Part shown: positions 2,630 to 13,830 of the stretch, piece by piece
Numbering within the stretch: position 1 is the stretch's first letter
How the letters are laid out: every line of letters begins with the position of its first letter
NCBI GenBank assembly: GCA_946965045.2
Contig: OX337229.1
Coordinates: forward strand, 2,914,001 to 2,978,000
Origin: Epithemia pelagica
Lineage: Eukaryota; Protista; Bacillariophyta
Direction: 5' to 3'
DNA length: 64,000 nucleotides
The notes under the pieces: generated by a model
Told to the model about the DNA's origin: nothing
Seen by the model: only the letters and a program-made list of their open reading frames with translations
Database searches by the model: none
Made by a program: the position numbers and the translations under genes

Positions 2630-5600
2630 ATGTCTATGGTGGCCTGCAATCTGTCTTCTTCTTCTGACGATGATGGTGGTACGGTGGCTTCTCGCCGTGA
2701 TTGTGACGGGTCCACCCCAAAAATTGCTTCCGAGACTCCGGGAAAGACTTGCTCCCAAAGATCAACAAAGTACAATCACCAACCCTCTAGTCAACTGTCG
2801 TTTGCGACAGATAGTGGGCATGGCGATGCCGATGGAGTCTTCCTCCCTGCCATCTCCTCCTCCCGAAATTCAAAGACTGGCAAGGATCGAATTCGATTTC
2901 GAAAAATCAATATTGGCTCATCCCTTTCCCCTACCCCACGAGTCATCGAGAAGCATCCCAAACATCGAAAGTCTAAAGACAAGCTACAAGGAAAACAATA
3001 CCCTCCACGACAACATGGCTCCTTTAGCGAGACTTCGGAGAACAACGAAAGGAAAGGAAGAAAGACAGCTGCCCTCCTTTCAAATTCCAAAAAACACGGC
3101 TCTTCAAGAACAGGGAGAACACCGCAGTCATCGTCGTCATCAGGCATCTATTCAGAACAAAAGACATCTGATAGCGACGACGAGTCACTGGACATCCAAG
3201 TTATTCAGTCGTCGGAAACGGGAACACAACCACCTCGAAAACAAAAGCACAGCACCGGTGTCGGAAGTCAAGGCACGCCATTGAATTCTGTGCAACAACC
3301 AAGTAAAACTAAAAAGAAAAGGACAACCTCCAGCAACAAGGCGAAGCGACAAAGGAGGCGTCTTCAGTCCTTGTCCACCAGCAAGTATCGACGGTCATCA
3401 GCCACAAGCTCTCAACTGGTTGATACTGATGAAGATGTCGAACCCGATGCTCCAGAAAATGACGAGAATTCGGTACAAGTGCTAATGAGAAAACCGATGG
3501 AATCAGACTCTCAAATCAACAACACACATGCGTCTCAAAGGGCTATTGGGTGTACAAACAACAAGAAACGGATTTCTTGCTCCAAGATCACAACTTCCTC
3601 AATGAAATCGAGTAGTTGTTCATCTAGAGAAAGGAAGAACCGATTGTCTAAAGAAAATGCTGGTGAAGACAGTGATTCAGTGGAAACGTTGCCCTTGGCA
3701 GCGGAACCGAAGCCTTCGCCAAGCTTTAGCCTGGCAGTACGACCAAAGGAACTTTGTTTACCGATTCATACCAGTTCTGACAATAAGAAAAGAACACAAC
3801 AGAGAGACAAGGCCTACGCGTCTTTTCCCTCCAGCAGCCCAAACACAGAGAAGCATCACGAACCAGCCCCCAAAAAGAGGCGCATTGCAAAGGATATTCT
3901 GAAAGTGGGTGACCGCATCTCTTACTATCATCCGGCTTTTGTTGCTGGAAATCCAATGGGATTCCGCGATACTACTATATTGGCAGTGACGCCTATTCCT
4001 CTGAATGCCAGCGATGATGTGGATTATTTTCCACTGGAATTGGACAATGCCGAAGTTCTTCCTGCCGATACAAGAGTAAAAAAATTCATGACAGGTAGGG
4101 AACGGCCTATTGACGAGTTTGTTCTGATTGAAGGATCAACTAAATCCAATGATGGTCGTCAAGTATCGGGCCTGCAAAGGCAAGGAGAACGTATGAAAAG
4201 TTTTCTTCGTTCGGCTAATCGGGCCTTGTCTACCGTTCCTGAGCATTTGCAAGACTTGAACCAGTTTCGTGACAAGGGCAGTAGCCAGAGCGACTCGTCC
4301 CTGTTGTTGGACGAAAGTGGTGGCAAATCCCAAGTCGGCGGGAAATCTAAGGAAAATTCAGCAAGCGATTCAAGCTCCTGTGAATCGGCTCCAGCATCAT
4401 CTAAGGTGTGTAGAGGGGCCTGTCCGCCTCTCCTCACTGATGTTTTACAACGGTTAGAGAAGAGAAGCAATGACGACTCTAAACATTCGCCTATGGGAGG
4501 AAGCGACAGCGAATCTTCGACTGAAACACCGACAGTGGTCCGATCTCCACATTTCGCCCACTTGAACATGTCGACAAAGGGATCCATTTCCGGGCAGAAA
4601 CCATCGTGGGCTTCAGAGTTGCGACCGAAAAATGACAATCGAAGCAGTGGGCTTCAAACAACCAGTGATAAGAGAAGGACTCCAAGAAAAACTGGTACTA
4701 ACAATGAAGACACCATGCCCTCACATAGGCTGTTCACGCTGTCCAGGGTAAAGAGCCGTCACTCTACGTCGACAAGTGCATCACAGAAGTCATCAACAAG
4801 TGATTGTTTACCGCTTTCGTTACAAAATATCATTAAGCCTTCGTCTTGTCGCGGTAAAGCAGGAGATCTCAAGCAGTCTCCCTCCAAAACATCTACTGCC
4901 GAGGAGTGCCCGTCTTCCACCGCATCTGACGGGAAACTGATCGAGAACGCTGCTGTGATGACGAAAACTCCCGGTTCGGTCCGGAGCTTCAAAGTATCGT
5001 CCTTGGCCAGTCATGGCCACCAGTCACCGACAAAACCCGGTCCCGAGAAGCTCCCTGCTACTGCTCCTTCTTCGACAGGCGATTTGCACCGTTCGACTTC
5101 CCATAGTACGGAAAGAAAGACGTCCAACCAGACACAGGGACACACCTCCATGCTCAAACATTCATCTCCATGCTACTCGACTTCATCATCGGAGGACTTT
5201 GAGCTTTTGTTGCGGGAGCAACCAAAGAGAAGTAATATGGCAAGAAATCTGAAGGGGTCCTCCTGTCTCAAATCTGTGCCCAAGGGCTCTTCAACACCCA
5301 GTTCAGCTGGGAGTTCCAACTTTTTGTCCGTGAGCCGACATGGCCGTAATTCACCGAGGACCACTGAGTCCCAGAGGGTCCTCAATACGTCGGATGGTCA
5401 GACTGATCACACAAATAGAGCCACGGTGAACAAAGGCACTGACAAGCCTTTCTTTTTGCCCGAGTCTCCTTCATCCGATGAATGGTCCATAAGAGAAGAT
5501 GAGAGACCACGGCCAACAGATACTGTGAACGAAGAACAAGAACAAAGGACTTACACGAAAACCTGCGACAAAGTGAAACCAGGACGGCATCGGTCTGGAT

Positions 5601-8293: not shown

Positions 8294-8448
8294 AAGTCTG
8301 CAAATGGTACGAACCAAAACCCAGAGATTTCAGCTGTGACATCTAAATATTACGTTGTGCAGAATCGAGCAAAACTTGTAAATACGGCAAGATCTATAGA
8401 TCGCCATGAGCAAACTCTTTCTTCCTCGACCATCGATGAAATGTCAGA

Positions 8449-10086
8449 TTACACATCTTGAACGAGATTAACTGCCTTTGACATAAACGAGAAATGAAAG
8501 GAGGTAGTAGTCACTTCTCGACTCAAGATTAATGCTTGATAGATCAATAGACACCACCTTACTGTGAAAATTCGCCTCTCGGTTTCAGGGGTGCTTGATG
8601 CTTTCCGCGAGACTCGACGAACGTCGCGAGCCGGCTTCTTGTGCGAGGTTGAAAGGTCAATCCGATTCTGTTTCAGCTTTGCTTCCAAATCTTCCGTGTA
8701 TGCCAGTAGCTCTTCATACTGTTGACGATTCATGTTGGACACGAGTTCCACCATTCCATCAGGGTGACCGGAGTCTAATTATACCCTCACTTTTAGACCC
8801 GGTCTAAAAGGGTATAATTATTTTAGACAGAGGTCGAGTCTAAAATAAAATTTTTAGACTCCTAACCTTAACCCTTCAGTAGCGCCGCCACCACTGCGTG
8901 AGTACGAGACCGTTCTGCCTCATTCATCTCAATGACATCTCAATGAACAAAGTAAGGTCTCAGTTATCCTCTCTCATGCTTAGAGAGTGCAACAACAATG
9001 TCATACATACCATCCAATAACTTAGATGATGAAGCTATGAGGTCCTCTGGATGTGTTGTCATAGACAATGCTCGCTCCTGGTAGCTGTCTGTCTAGGGTT
9101 AGGGTTATTGCTTCGCCATACAAAACCACGGTGAGATTTTAGACCCTGTTTTAGACATTTTATACATTCTAAAAGTACTTTTAGATTTATTTTAGACCCG
9201 AAATATTTTAGACTGTCTAAACGGTCACCCTGATTCCATGTCCAATTCGAACAAAACGCCAAACTCGACCCAGAATCAACAATCCAATCATGGTGGCCAA
9301 AGTATCGTCATCCAATGCGTGAAAGGTGCTCTCTAGAGCAATGCTCGCAGAGACAATTGTGAAATCCAGTGCATAAAACGCCTGACGGAAAAATATCCAT
9401 GGCTTAATTGCCCACATGGTCACCAAGAGTTCCACCATGAATATACTGAGAGTGGTTATGGTCATATAAAACATTGCCTCTTCTGCGGAATGAACTTTGT
9501 GCCATTTGTGTTCATCGCAACCTGCTTCGTATTCCTTCTTCGGTACTAATGTCGGATCTTCACAATAATAAGAGCCATCTCCGCTTCCCGCCAAAAGCCT
9601 CATTCGCAGGGCCTCATCCTCGTCCCCCGTTGGTGCACAGCACGAAATTCCATCTCGCCGGATCAAATGGCACTGAGGATACGAGGTCATGAGCGCGAGT
9701 TCTGTAAATAGGAGAATCACATCAAAGAGAAGAAGGCCGGCCAAGGTGGACTGTACCCATCGCTGATGAAGAAACGCCAAGGTTCTGTGTTCTAGCGAGT
9801 CTTCTCCGTGGGTTTCATGCGCATGAGCTTGCGCTTGTTGATTGGTTGGAATACCAAAGTGAATTCCTCGTTGAGAGATTCCAGCTACGAGGCGCTGTCT
9901 CATGTGGTCCAAGCGATCGGGAATTATGGATGGTGGCCTGCGATCACGGACACTATCAGGATGCTGTTGTTCATCTTTGGCCGTTTCAGGTTCCGTCGAC
10001 GTCGAACCTTTCGACTCAGGCTCATCGGCAAGTGACGACGCATGCGTAGGAAGTGAATCGGTTGTCGCTAGATTCACCGTTGTCAT
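8449..10086 (-). CDS. HVCN1: Voltage-gated proton channel Hv1, coding sequence interrupted by a MITE at 8760-9232
   Basis: S1 LLLFDVILL (selectivity Asp), S2 ...FMVEL, S3 LDFTIV, S4 GRVWRFVRIGHG (RxWRxxR signature). Removing the MITE and one TSD copy gives ...RIGHG-MVELVSNMNRQQYEELLAYTEDLEAKLKQN..., an in-frame coiled-coil-like tail; 1158 nt = 385 aa + stop. A further in-frame 87-nt intron (ACA|GTAAGG...TCAAAG|GCA) near the 3' end is possible. Confidence 0.92.
8760..9232. mobile_element. Non-autonomous MITE (473 bp) with hAT-like termini and a 7-bp TSD
   Basis: TIR CAGGGTGACCG (8760-8770) / CGGTCACCCTG (9222-9232). ATTCCAT at 8753-8759 and 9233-9239. Many subterminal TTTTAGAC/GTCTAAAA motifs. 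Excision restores the Hv1 frame. Confidence 0.93.
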
Positions 10087-10376
10087 ATCACAGAGTTACT
10101 TGAAATAGTGGCTGGAGAGCTGCACCTTAAACAAGATCTTATATCTCAAAACAGAACGCAAAGAACAATATGCGGTTGGCGTTGGAGGTTGGAGGCAAAA
10201 CATATTATAGTAGAGGAAATGGCCCAGCTCAGACCCAACCCCATATCCACACCGTATCCTTTGCCGACAAAAATGCGACCACAACAAAAAAGGTGATGTA
10301 TGAAGTCGTCACCACCGAGTCAGTCGGAAGATCCAAAATACAAATGAAAAGATAAGGTCAAGACGACCGATGCAAG

Positions 10377-11285: not shown

Positions 11286-11535
11286 GGTTAAAACTGAATT
11301 CCAACTAGACGATTGTACACCTGTGGATCCATGATGTCTATCGCCAAAACTTTTGTGTGCATTGGTTTGGGGATGTTTGCCGTATCCCTGTCGACGATTC
11401 TTCATCCTAGGTGACTTCACGGCGCTTGAGAGCACGAGACCATCGAACAATACATGACGATAGCCTTATCCATGTTTCATAGGGAAAAGAGTAATGCGTT
11501 ATACACTTACACAACAGTCCAAGTTCTCTGCATAC

Positions 11536-13830
11536 TCAGTCCTTCTTTGAAACGAGTTCTTCTACATCTCCAGAAGATGCGACTTCAACTTTCCCGTTCT
11601 CTTGGTCCGTTGCTCCGTCTGTAGCCTCGTTTTCGCCAGCAGCTTCGACTTCTTCCTCCTTATCATCATCATCCTTTGCCTCTGGGGTATCTTTCTTTTG
11701 CTTTTCCAACATTGCGTTAGCTGCATCCTTCTTTTCTTGAATTAGACTGTCCATTGCTTGTCGGATGGCTTGATATTCGGCTAGCGCGCGTTTAGAGCGT
11801 CCCATGGCCGTCCACAGACTTCCTCGACAGTATGGAATGATAATCTTGTTCCACAGGGGTACATATTCCAGGGAAATGACGTCTCGAAGCATTTTCCTCT
11901 GATCCTTATGGTGGCTGCTCGTACTGCCGGTCGATGGCGTAGAAGTAATGAGCTGTCGCTCCAGTTGCTTCAATTCTTGTGATACTACATTGAGAACTTG
12001 CTCCTCCAAGGCTTGTTCGAGTCGCGGAAGGGCTGAAGGCAACAAACAACGTCGCAACTCATTCAACCCCAAAAGAACTCCATTCACAAAACGACCCAGT
12101 GGTGGCGTTTGCATCAACACACGCGGTGGTGACAAAGGTTGTTCAAGCAACTCATCGGCAGAGGATGGGACCACAAAATCTTGAAAAGCTTGTTGCACCT
12201 CTTCTGCATTGGAAGTGGACCAAACAACAACGGCTGTCGCCACTCCGCTGCTACTTGCACCCCCGACAGAGCTGGCTATCAAGGGAGTTGCCACATTGAC
12301 CTGCTGACAAATGTTCCAAACTTCATGCAAGGGCTTGACACCCTGTTGTATCCAACAATGATGCACAATCCAGTGGACAAGAGCGTTCTCAAAGATATCT
12401 GGGATCCAGTAAGCCGTGAAATCAGCGCCCAAGCGCCCCATACTAGATGCAAAGAAAACGGTTGCTTCCATCAAATCTCGCAAGTTTGCCGCCCCAAATG
12501 ACAAGACTTGGTGTTGTTGATTACGGCTGGACGACATGGCAGTATTGGTGCTTTTGCCTCCAGTCGATGCGGTGCCTCCTGATGCCATGACAGTTGTATC
12601 CGCGTTCGCTGCGGCATTTGAGATGCCCTGTTGTAAAATTTGTAGAAATCCACGAATTCTACGACATGCCCATAGCGACAATAACGCGGCACTCGATGAC
12701 ATGTCTGCGTTCGTACCAGCCGATGTGTTGGTATTGGTCGATGCGTTCGCTCGAAAAATCGCGTTGAACTGTGTTGCAATTTCAAACACCCGTGTCCGAT
12801 ATCGTTCAATCGTATCGAGGAGGTCCTCCGAAGAGGTCGATGCCGATCCTTTCGAAGAAGAGCCAGGTACAAGAGAGTCCAGCCAGATATCCCGAGCTTC
12901 GAGGAAATCAATTTGCAGTTTGACTTCCATGGCGCGGTAAATTCGATCTTGGTCGACACTGGAGTTCATTTCGTCGTTCGTTGTGACGGATGATGATTGT
13001 GATGACATTTCCAGGTCAATAGAATTAAGACGACGCAGGGCTGTTACAACTTCCAAACAATCTGGCATCGTTACTGTTCCTTGTAAGCGGTATAGTAGAT
13101 GACGGCGCAAATCATCTTGCCGGTTACGGATCTGAGAAACAACGTGACTCACAACCTTGGTGCTATTGCTATTTTCCGATGAACAGCTACTACCATCAGG
13201 GACCGATGACGAGGATCCACGTCGACGTTCCAATGAATTTGCAAGACTGGCGATACTAAGAGCCTCTTCATACAAGTTTGATCGAACGCATGCATCCATC
13301 AAGGAAGGAAGTTCCAAAAGTTCCAACAAGGCTGAATGCTGCAACAGAGTGCGCCGACGAACACGATGCTTTTCAGATAGAATAGCGAGTGATTGGATTT
13401 TCTTCTTGCTCTTCGAATCATTTTCGGACGCTTCATCCGCATCTGGTTCCTCCGATTGGGCTTGCCACACTTGTTCCTGAGCTGATTCCACTTTTTTCTT
13501 CACTGAGGTGATGATGGATTCCAAATCTCGCAACGATTGTTCCATTCGCTGCCCACGCTTTTCGACAGCGACAAAGGTTCCAGCATGTACAGCACAAAGT
13601 GATTCCAACGCATCTTCGGCAGCTTCCAACGCTGCCTTAGCTACGAGACGTTCATCCATTTCGGATCCATGTCCCGCTCCATCTTGGTTCAACGAGGACA
13701 AGATCCACGAAGATGATGAATTGTTGTTGCTGATAACGTTTGTCCGCCTTTCATCTGATAAGGGAGATTCTGTTTCCAAGTTCATACTACCACCGTTACC
13801 CACTAGAGAAGATGTTAGAGTGGATGCCAT
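11536..13830 (-). CDS. COG8: Conserved oligomeric Golgi complex subunit 8 (Dor1-like)
   Basis: LLQHSALLELLELPSLMDACVRSNLYEEAL ... DCLEVVTALRRL ... FLEARD ... FEIATQFNAIF ... SSMGRLGADF are typical Dor1/COG8 motifs. Confidence 0.9.
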   Translation of the reverse strand: MASTLTSSLVGNGGSMNLETESPLSDERRTNVISNNNSSSSWILSSLNQDGAGHGSEMDERLVAKAALEAAEDALESLCAVHAGTFVAVEKRGQRMEQSLRDLESIITSVKKKVESAQEQVWQAQSEEPDADEASENDSKSKKKIQSLAILSEKHRVRRRTLLQHSALLELLELPSLMDACVRSNLYEEALSIASLANSLERRRGSSSSVPDGSSCSSENSNSTKVVSHVVSQIRNRQDDLRRHLLYRLQGTVTMPDCLEVVTALRRLNSIDLEMSSQSSSVTTNDEMNSSVDQDRIYRAMEVKLQIDFLEARDIWLDSLVPGSSSKGSASTSSEDLLDTIERYRTRVFEIATQFNAIFRANASTNTNTSAGTNADMSSSAALLSLWACRRIRGFLQILQQGISNAAANADTTVMASGGTASTGGKSTNTAMSSSRNQQHQVLSFGAANLRDLMEATVFFASSMGRLGADFTAYWIPDIFENALVHWIVHHCWIQQGVKPLHEVWNICQQVNVATPLIASSVGGASSSGVATAVVVWSTSNAEEVQQAFQDFVVPSSADELLEQPLSPPRVLMQTPPLGRFVNGVLLGLNELRRCLLPSALPRLEQALEEQVLNVVSQELKQLERQLITSTPSTGSTSSHHKDQRKMLRDVISLEYVPLWNKIIIPYCRGSLWTAMGRSKRALAEYQAIRQAMDSLIQEKKDAANAMLEKQKKDTPEAKDDDDKEEEVEAAGENEATDGATDQENGKVEVASSGDVEELVSKKD

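Follow-up and report, generated by a model that had tools for sequence, protein, structure and literature searches.

A miniature hAT-derived element interrupts one allele of an Hv1-type channel gene directly after S4 in the diatom Epithemia pelagica

The locus

A stretch of 64,000 nucleotides from the diatom Epithemia pelagica (GenBank assembly GCA_946965045.2, contig OX337229.1, positions 2,914,001 to 2,978,000 of the forward strand; henceforth the window, to which coordinates refer unless a locus is named) carries a gene for an Hv1-type channel that is interrupted by a short transposable element. On the minus strand, an open reading frame (ORF) of 289 aa (10086..9217) starts with an ATG at 10086, ends with a TAG at 9219-9217 and has the C-terminus RIGHGIRVTV. 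It is followed by an orphan ORF of 101 aa (8754..8449) with the N-terminus MVELVSNMNR. The first part of the gene encodes a disordered N-terminus, the transmembrane segment S1, a Cys/His-rich S1-S2 loop and segments S2, S3 and S4. The insertion point lies after Gly284, within the uninterrupted helix formed by S4 and the C-terminal segment. Coordinates of all features are collected in Table 1.

Based on the letters of the window, an original prediction had held that both ORFs belong to one gene, split directly after S4 by a miniature inverted-repeat transposable element (MITE) of 473 bp with 11-bp terminal inverted repeats (TIRs) and the 7-bp target-site duplication (TSD) ATTCCAT. The element, its ends and its duplication are all present in the sequence as described, and the split falls where it had been placed. 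Once the element and one copy of ATTCCAT are removed, the reading frame of this filled allele amounts to 854 nt plus 304 nt, i.e., 1158 nt or 385 codons and a stop. The prediction that such a removal yields a 385-aa protein is borne out by an existing allele that lacks exactly these 480 bp: it encodes a natural protein of 385 aa (P0001), the last 101 residues of which are those of the orphan ORF. The predicted product of the filled allele keeps S1 to S4 with all three S4 arginines and loses the final 101 residues; it ends 10 residues past the third arginine (R3), including five foreign residues (IRVTV).

Table 1. Features of the interrupted Hv1-type gene, of the inserted element and of related element copies. 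Positions refer to the window, or to the named locus for L023 to L025; fractions give conservation among 41 homologues.
Feature	Position	Strand	Remarks
Hv1-type gene, first part	9233..10086	-	codons 1-284 plus 2 nt, from start codon to insertion point
Hv1-type gene, second part	8449..8752	-	post-S4 helix (residues 285 to ~318), non-conserved tail, stop codon
Premature stop TAG	9217..9219	-	within the element, 5 codons past RIGHG; yields 289-aa product
Asp122 codon in S1, taken as counterpart of the Hv1 selectivity-filter aspartate	9721..9723	-	invariant, 41/41; D-x6-E spacing as in human and mouse S1
Codon 212 in S2	9451..9453	-	ACT (Thr) in disrupted allele, ATT (Ile) in intact allele; single nucleotide polymorphism (SNP) at 9452
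S4 signature RVWRFVR (R274, W276, R277, R280)	9247..9267	-	invariant, 41/41; aligns with RLWRVAR of solved Hv1 structures
E287			36/41
H294			33/41
L300			33/41
Y303			40/41
L307			32/41
E308			31/41
P319			36/41
Non-autonomous hAT-derived MITE, 473 bp	8760..9232		missing from empty allele; sister copies and parent found
Left TIR CAGGGTGACCG	8760..8770	+	perfect 11/11 inverted match
Right TIR	9222..9232	-	exact complement of left TIR, 11/11
TSD copy 1, ATTCCAT	8753..8759		single in empty allele
TSD copy 2, ATTCCAT	9233..9239
Left subterminal region	8771..8862		repeated TTTTAGAC / GTCTAAAA, both orientations
Right subterminal region	9108..9221		same TTTTAGAC / GTCTAAAA motifs
Telomere-like CCCTAA-type stretch	8863..8875		arm of internal inverted repeat
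Telomere-like TTAGGG-type stretch	9095..9107		opposite arm
L023	4088-4559		95% identical copy; TSD GTATATT
L024	4094 to ~4553		95% identical copy, right end deleted; TSD CTCTATC
L025	8582-13026 (4,445 bp)		same ends, parent-type element; TSD GTGCAAG

An uninterrupted allele

The uninterrupted allele was found by a search with the 289-aa piece, to which P0001 is 98% identical. It lies at positions 4001-5158 of locus L001, on a 1.52-Mb contig of the ENA assembly ERZ21939226, and differs from the filled site by the absence of exactly 480 bp (473 + 7), with one ATTCCAT left (ATGGAAT in gene sense). Because L001 and the window are 97.2-99.8% identical over 9 kb and share the same neighbour genes, L001 represents either the second haplotype or a different strain, the organism being the same or a very close relative. 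An exact look-up of the neighbour proteins of the window gave no entry in the protein collection, to which the assembly of the window therefore does not belong. The filled and the intact allele differ at six coding positions, five of them non-synonymous and one synonymous. One of the differences replaces an isoleucine of S2 by threonine in the disrupted allele (I212T), at a position where 41/41 homologues have Ile.

The neighbouring Serinc protein has an identical counterpart (100%) on the ENA contig that carries L001 and is 83% identical to a transcript of Entomoneis paludosa, the nearest named relative encountered. Together with the diatom matches of the channel, this places the source among the raphid pennate diatoms, close to Entomoneis and the Surirellales. 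A second long-read assembly (ENA ERZ25042306, ctg3472l; L021) contains a Serinc orthologue with 88% identity and probably derives from a related species. Two further haplotype differences were noted in the vicinity of the gene. A stretch of 30 bp between the 3' end of the Hv1-type gene and the neighbour gene (window 8301-8330) is absent in L001 and in contigs of the public runs X1-X3 described below, and it is immediately upstream of the start codon (window 10097-10214) that the haplotypes diverge most, by numerous substitutions and an indel of 9-10 bp; allele-specific expression could be affected by this divergence.

The element and its family

The ATTCCAT copies are flanked by differing bases on both sides, and the duplication is therefore exactly 7 bp long. 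With one mismatch tolerated, the CAGGGTGACCG ends have only two matches in the window, and no second copy of the element was found there. The motifs TTTTAGAC and GTCTAAAA recur many times within ~100 bp of each end. Farther inward, a telomere-like (TTAGGG)2 inverted pair flanks a core of 219 bp.

To trace the family, a small ORF within the element was translated and used as a query. This search gave three ORF calls in ERZ21939226 and, from these, the loci L023 to L025. In the copy in L024, 10 of the 11 right-TIR bases are missing but both copies of its 7-bp duplication are retained; it is immobilised by this terminal deletion. The element in L025 is of the parent type: positions 1-296 of the MITE match its left end (81% identity) and positions 310-473 its right end (93%), and the MITE is thus an internal-deletion derivative of such an element.

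The parent carries ORFs on the same strand, its transposase reading frame being in several pieces. These ORFs match the Pfam domain Dimer_Tnp_hAT with 35.3 bits (cut-off 21.4) and DUF659 with 23 bits, the latter below its cut-off, and among named Atlas clusters the best ten belong without exception to DUF659, hAT-like RNase-H or ZBED. The first parent ORF additionally gives a weak lead to a BED finger. A sequence search of solved structures with the 337-aa and 258-aa parent ORFs returned no match. Two more same-strand ORFs lie past the ORF with the dimerisation domain, at L025 positions 11365-12081 (238 aa) and 12117-12878 (253 aa); they lack Pfam matches and are possibly unknown cargo.

The TIRs begin with CAGGG, in agreement with the consensus YARNG of hAT ends, and the repeated subterminal motifs likewise fit the superfamily. 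As expected of a MITE, the element, which at 473 bp stays below the customary ~800 bp, combines inverted ends and a target duplication with many copies and a longer parent, and contains no ORF with a family match. In the public runs X1-X3, contig depth summed over the element amounts to 17-50x that of the flanks, and contigs exit at 8756-8759 and at 9230-9235 into many sequences. Taken together, high depth and many distinct flanks indicate tens of family copies; summed contig depths are not copy numbers. Among JGI metagenome contigs, the element-end pattern (18 specified bases) was found at 18 loci, none of which is similar past the pattern, i.e., they are chance matches. A literature search for diatom hAT MITEs returned nothing specific.

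Identity of the channel

By its sequence signature and its architecture, the gene is assigned to the Hv1-type channels. Only the voltage-sensor part of the Pfam domain Ion_trans is covered (profile positions 31-117 of 241), and the 385 aa contain no other Pfam domain. The predicted protein consists of a voltage sensor of four helices, S1-S4, without the S5-S6 pore domain and without a phosphatase domain. Its only sequence matches in the PDB are a mouse Hv1 chimera (3WKV, E 1.1e-6) and human Hv1 (5OQK, E 1.7e-6), with alignments spanning S2, S3 and S4 and, for 3WKV, also the helix after S4. The closest Hv1 sequence matches are from diatoms, Epithemia and Amphora among them.

In an alignment of 41 diatom-type homologues, D122, E129, the S4 residues R274, W276, R277 and R280 and the ensuing I-G-H-G are invariant; these are the positions by which Hv1 is recognised. 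Since phmmer aligned S2-S4 only, the correspondence of the S1 aspartate was placed by hand: D122 is followed seven residues on by E129, and the same D-x6-E spacing is found in LVVLDALLVLAE, the S1 stretch of solved Hv1 chains. We take this mid-S1 aspartate to be the counterpart of human D112, the residue conferring proton selectivity.

An AlphaFold2 model of the protein has a mean predicted local distance difference test score (pLDDT) of 72, exceeding 90 in the membrane core. It consists of four long helices, S4 and the cytoplasmic helix being modelled as one unbroken helix (residues 264-313). Structural comparison with VIA-align matched the model to the voltage sensor of Ci-VSP (Z 14.5) and to Hv1 (3wkv; Z 11.4, residues 98-314), and every structural match is a voltage-sensor domain. 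A Foldseek search with the whole model gave no match reaching E 0.001.

The S1-S2 loop (window 9480-9680, minus strand, residues 136-200) is long and contains the invariant or nearly invariant residues C139, C149, C150, C175, C190, H193 and H199; in the model it forms a small beta-hairpin of low confidence. The loop is probably an extracellular disulphide-bonded module with a zinc site. Loop histidines are conserved in coccolithophore and diatom Hv1 and are required for zinc block in EhHv1 (Taylor et al., PMC3119654).

A second Hv1-type gene lies on another contig of ERZ21939226 (L020:1001-1894). Its product, P0006, has 297 aa, is 52% identical to the 385-aa protein, and carries the S1 aspartate, the S4 motif and the post-S4 helix.

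The helix lost from the filled allele

The original prediction had named, as an outcome that would overturn it, orthologues failing to continue from RIGHG into the helix encoded by the orphan ORF. This outcome did not occur: in all 41 diatom homologues the protein runs on from RIGHG into a conserved helix. The consensus after RIGHG is (I/L/M)-V-E-(V/L/I)-T, or, over a longer distance, (I/L/M)VE..Y..LE..L, and conservation extends to about residue 319. The 35 helix residues lost to the insertion rank among the best conserved of the family. Such strong conservation across the 41 homologues indicates that the post-S4 helix is under selection.

The predicted helix 285-318 is amphipathic. Its hydrophobic residues at 286/293/300/307 and at 303/310 are compatible with heptads, yet the peak of the periodicity is at 3.6 residues. 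From the sequence, a coiled coil is plausible. To our knowledge, dimerisation has never been shown for a diatom Hv1. No coiled coil is predicted for the channel of Phaeodactylum (review PMC10377628).

The insertion site in public runs

The four best public runs (X1-X4), which stem from one organism and one study and are available as contigs only, all contain the joint 8752>9233, in which 480 nt with the non-canonical ends AT..TG are skipped. Together with the empty allele in ERZ21939226, this joint establishes that the insertion is polymorphic, as the original prediction had considered possible. X1-X3 each contain a 178-nt contig (10067-10244) that agrees fully with the window, against more than 15 differences in L001, and L001-type contigs occur elsewhere in these runs. 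Moreover, the alleles at 9887-9956 and at 9989 are opposite in X1 and X2, two runs of a single sample. Window-like and L001-like contigs and the opposite alleles of X1 and X2 thus indicate that the samples carry both haplotypes.

Contigs of X1-X3 stop exactly at 8759, and those of X3 restart exactly at 9233. In X3, the contig across the empty joint has a depth of 79, compared with 114-136 in the flanks. Contig breaks and a drop in depth would be expected of a mixture of filled and empty junctions, and these breaks, combined with the nearby haplotype-specific contigs, make it likely that one strain is heterozygous for the insertion, the other possibility raised by the original prediction.

X4 has a different appearance. 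A contig of 1,234 nt extends across the joint, by 454 nt on one side and 779 nt on the other, depth is zero inside the element and in the intergenic stretch, and one collinear contig (8299-10011) has the empty joint and all six L001-type SNPs. If X4 is RNA, the gene would be intronless, the 385-aa form would be expressed, and no transcript of the filled allele would have been assembled.

Origin and state of the filled allele

We favour the following explanation, which we hold to be highly likely. A miniature non-coding deletion derivative of a hAT element entered the coding sequence of the intronless Hv1-type gene in one haplotype, making a 7-bp target duplication between the invariant RIGHG and the conserved cytoplasmic helix that prolongs S4. 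Translation of the filled allele would proceed 5 codons into the element and stop, with S1-S4 kept, and the other haplotype would represent the untouched ancestral site encoding the full 385-aa protein. The strain would carry both alleles, and the filled one, sheltered by the intact allele and by the paralogue, would be weak or without function and already decaying, rather than a selected channel variant. The insertion with its family and parent, the empty allele and the Hv1-type signature are established, whereas the presence of both alleles in the strain and the state of the filled one are inferred. A sheltered weak or null allele is favoured because the lost helix is conserved, because five of the six coding differences from the intact allele are non-synonymous, with I212T at an invariant site, and because only the intact allele is seen in the RNA-like run X4.

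Several points weigh against this explanation. No contig crossing the filled junction is found among the listed contigs of the four runs; in general, contigs cannot prove absence. X4 looks like RNA from its depth pattern, its run type not being on record. I212T is one change and could be a neutral polymorphism. hAT elements usually make TSDs of 8 bp, a length that is typical though not universal, and the duplication is 7 bp in 4/4 copies of the present family (ATTCCAT, GTATATT, CTCTATC and GTGCAAG); in view of its transposase domains, the element is filed as hAT-related with an atypical TSD length. Finally, C-terminally truncated animal Hv1 channels conduct as monomers (PMC10377628), so that a 289-aa product that is synthesised and reaches the membrane could be functional.

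The last point leads to the most serious alternative, namely the inference of the original prediction that the filled allele is not null: its product, consisting of S1-S4 only, would pass protons as a monomer, or would be altered in gating, and would exist as a natural variant beside the full-length form. Laboratory Hv1 delta-C constructs are monomeric, still selective and voltage-gated, and the filled-allele stop, ~10 residues past the third S4 arginine, lies, we presume, near their cut point. The four transmembrane helices and the three S4 arginines are kept, with 10 residues after R3, and the stop, to judge from the collinear contig, sits in a gene without introns and thus in effect in its last exon; voltage dependence even survives truncation inside S4 (review PMC10377628). 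Against this, the truncated product would lack a helix that is strongly conserved in the 41 diatom homologues and would have Thr at the invariant Ile212 of S2. Furthermore, X4 contains the intact allele only, without read-through into the element, and a filled transcript would have more than 900 nt of unnatural 3' sequence. We consider this alternative unlikely. Slightly less likely still is its most specific form, in which the strain would be heterozygous and would express, in addition to the full-length form, a stable channel of S1-S4 with I212T that works as a monomer. If this were true, a transposon would have made in nature the delta-C channel of physiology laboratories, and two kinetically different proton channels would arise from one locus.

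The remaining alternatives concern the element itself, and none of them appears probable. In some marine protists, new introns arise from transposons known as introners, and an element spliced out in this way would leave the filled allele with a near-full-length channel. When GT/GC..AG splice pairs were enumerated, frame-keeping GT..AG pairs were indeed found, for example the donor AGG|GTGACC at the element end (window 9228) with the acceptor CAACAG|TAT (window 8719) in the coding part beyond the element. However, no in-frame splice pair restores the natural protein: donors sparing S4 (9228 and 9222) share a frame solely with acceptors that lie downstream of the element, at the cost of at least 12 conserved residues, and they do not keep the frame with the one acceptor that the element contains. 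The four runs contain no spliced joint beyond the 480-nt AT..TG skip, which represents the empty allele and not splicing, since its ends are non-canonical and the joint is present in a DNA assembly. Splicing of the element is thus very improbable. About as little credence, or marginally less, is given to a secondary origin of the empty allele by precise excision from one of two formerly filled haplotypes. Excision is conceivable, given the perfect ends of the present copy and a possible autonomous partner in the genome, but hAT excision usually leaves footprints and the empty site is exact, in frame and in agreement with the orthologue consensus RIGHG(I/L/M)VE. Least credible of all is an assembly artefact, a repeat misplaced in the contig, which the original prediction had listed as a possible refutation of its own reading. 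It could draw on the want of a listed public contig across the filled junction; yet the element is flanked by an exact 7-bp target duplication, three other copies have 7-bp duplications of their own, and duplications in four independent copies are not made by assemblers. Contigs of three runs, moreover, break exactly at the junction, as expected with both forms present.

Implications

The locus provides a clean insertion polymorphism, for which the filled and the exact empty site were recovered along with sister copies and a longer parent. It belongs to known kinds, being a hAT-derived MITE insertion polymorphism in an Hv1-type gene, and is not a new kind of system. Beyond the original prediction, the analysis adds the natural empty allele, the element family with its parent and the 7-bp rule. 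The polymorphism demonstrates recent mobility, in this diatom lineage, of a hAT/MITE family that makes 7-bp instead of 8-bp duplications. For diatom Hv1 it constitutes a natural experiment, one allele having the conserved post-S4 helix and the other lacking it, which could be used to probe the role of this helix.

Comparison with known systems

The MITE resembles Mar of Drosophila (PMC3517528) and BniHAT of Brassica nigra (PMC7385995): each is short, non-coding and derived by deletion from a longer hAT element, with which it has its ends and subterminal regions in common. Further likenesses are the short inverted ends starting with CAG, the many copies and the insertion in or near genes. It differs from both in its diatom host, in its internal telomere-like inverted stretches and in a TSD of 7 bp in 4/4 copies instead of the usual 8 bp. 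Like introners, it is a short inverted-repeat element with a target duplication in coding sequence, and one of its ends holds a possible GT donor. Unlike in the case of introners, no splice pair restores the frame precisely, no spliced joint is seen, and the diatom host gene is otherwise intronless.

The channel shares with animal Hv1/HVCN1/VSOP, with coccolithophore EhHv1 and CpHv1 and with the previously described diatom homologues (PMC3119654) a four-helix voltage sensor without a pore, the S1 aspartate and the S4 motif RxWRxxR. As in known Hv1 channels, S4 extends into a cytoplasmic helix, and the histidines of the S1-S2 loop are conserved, as they are in algal Hv1. In contrast to known Hv1 channels, the diatom protein has an S1-S2 loop of ~60 residues with five conserved cysteines and, unlike the mammalian channels, which have Asn after R3, it has His in that position. 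Compared with laboratory delta-C Hv1 (review PMC10377628), finally, the cut in the diatom gene is a natural one made by a transposon; it adds IRVTV and is accompanied by I212T.

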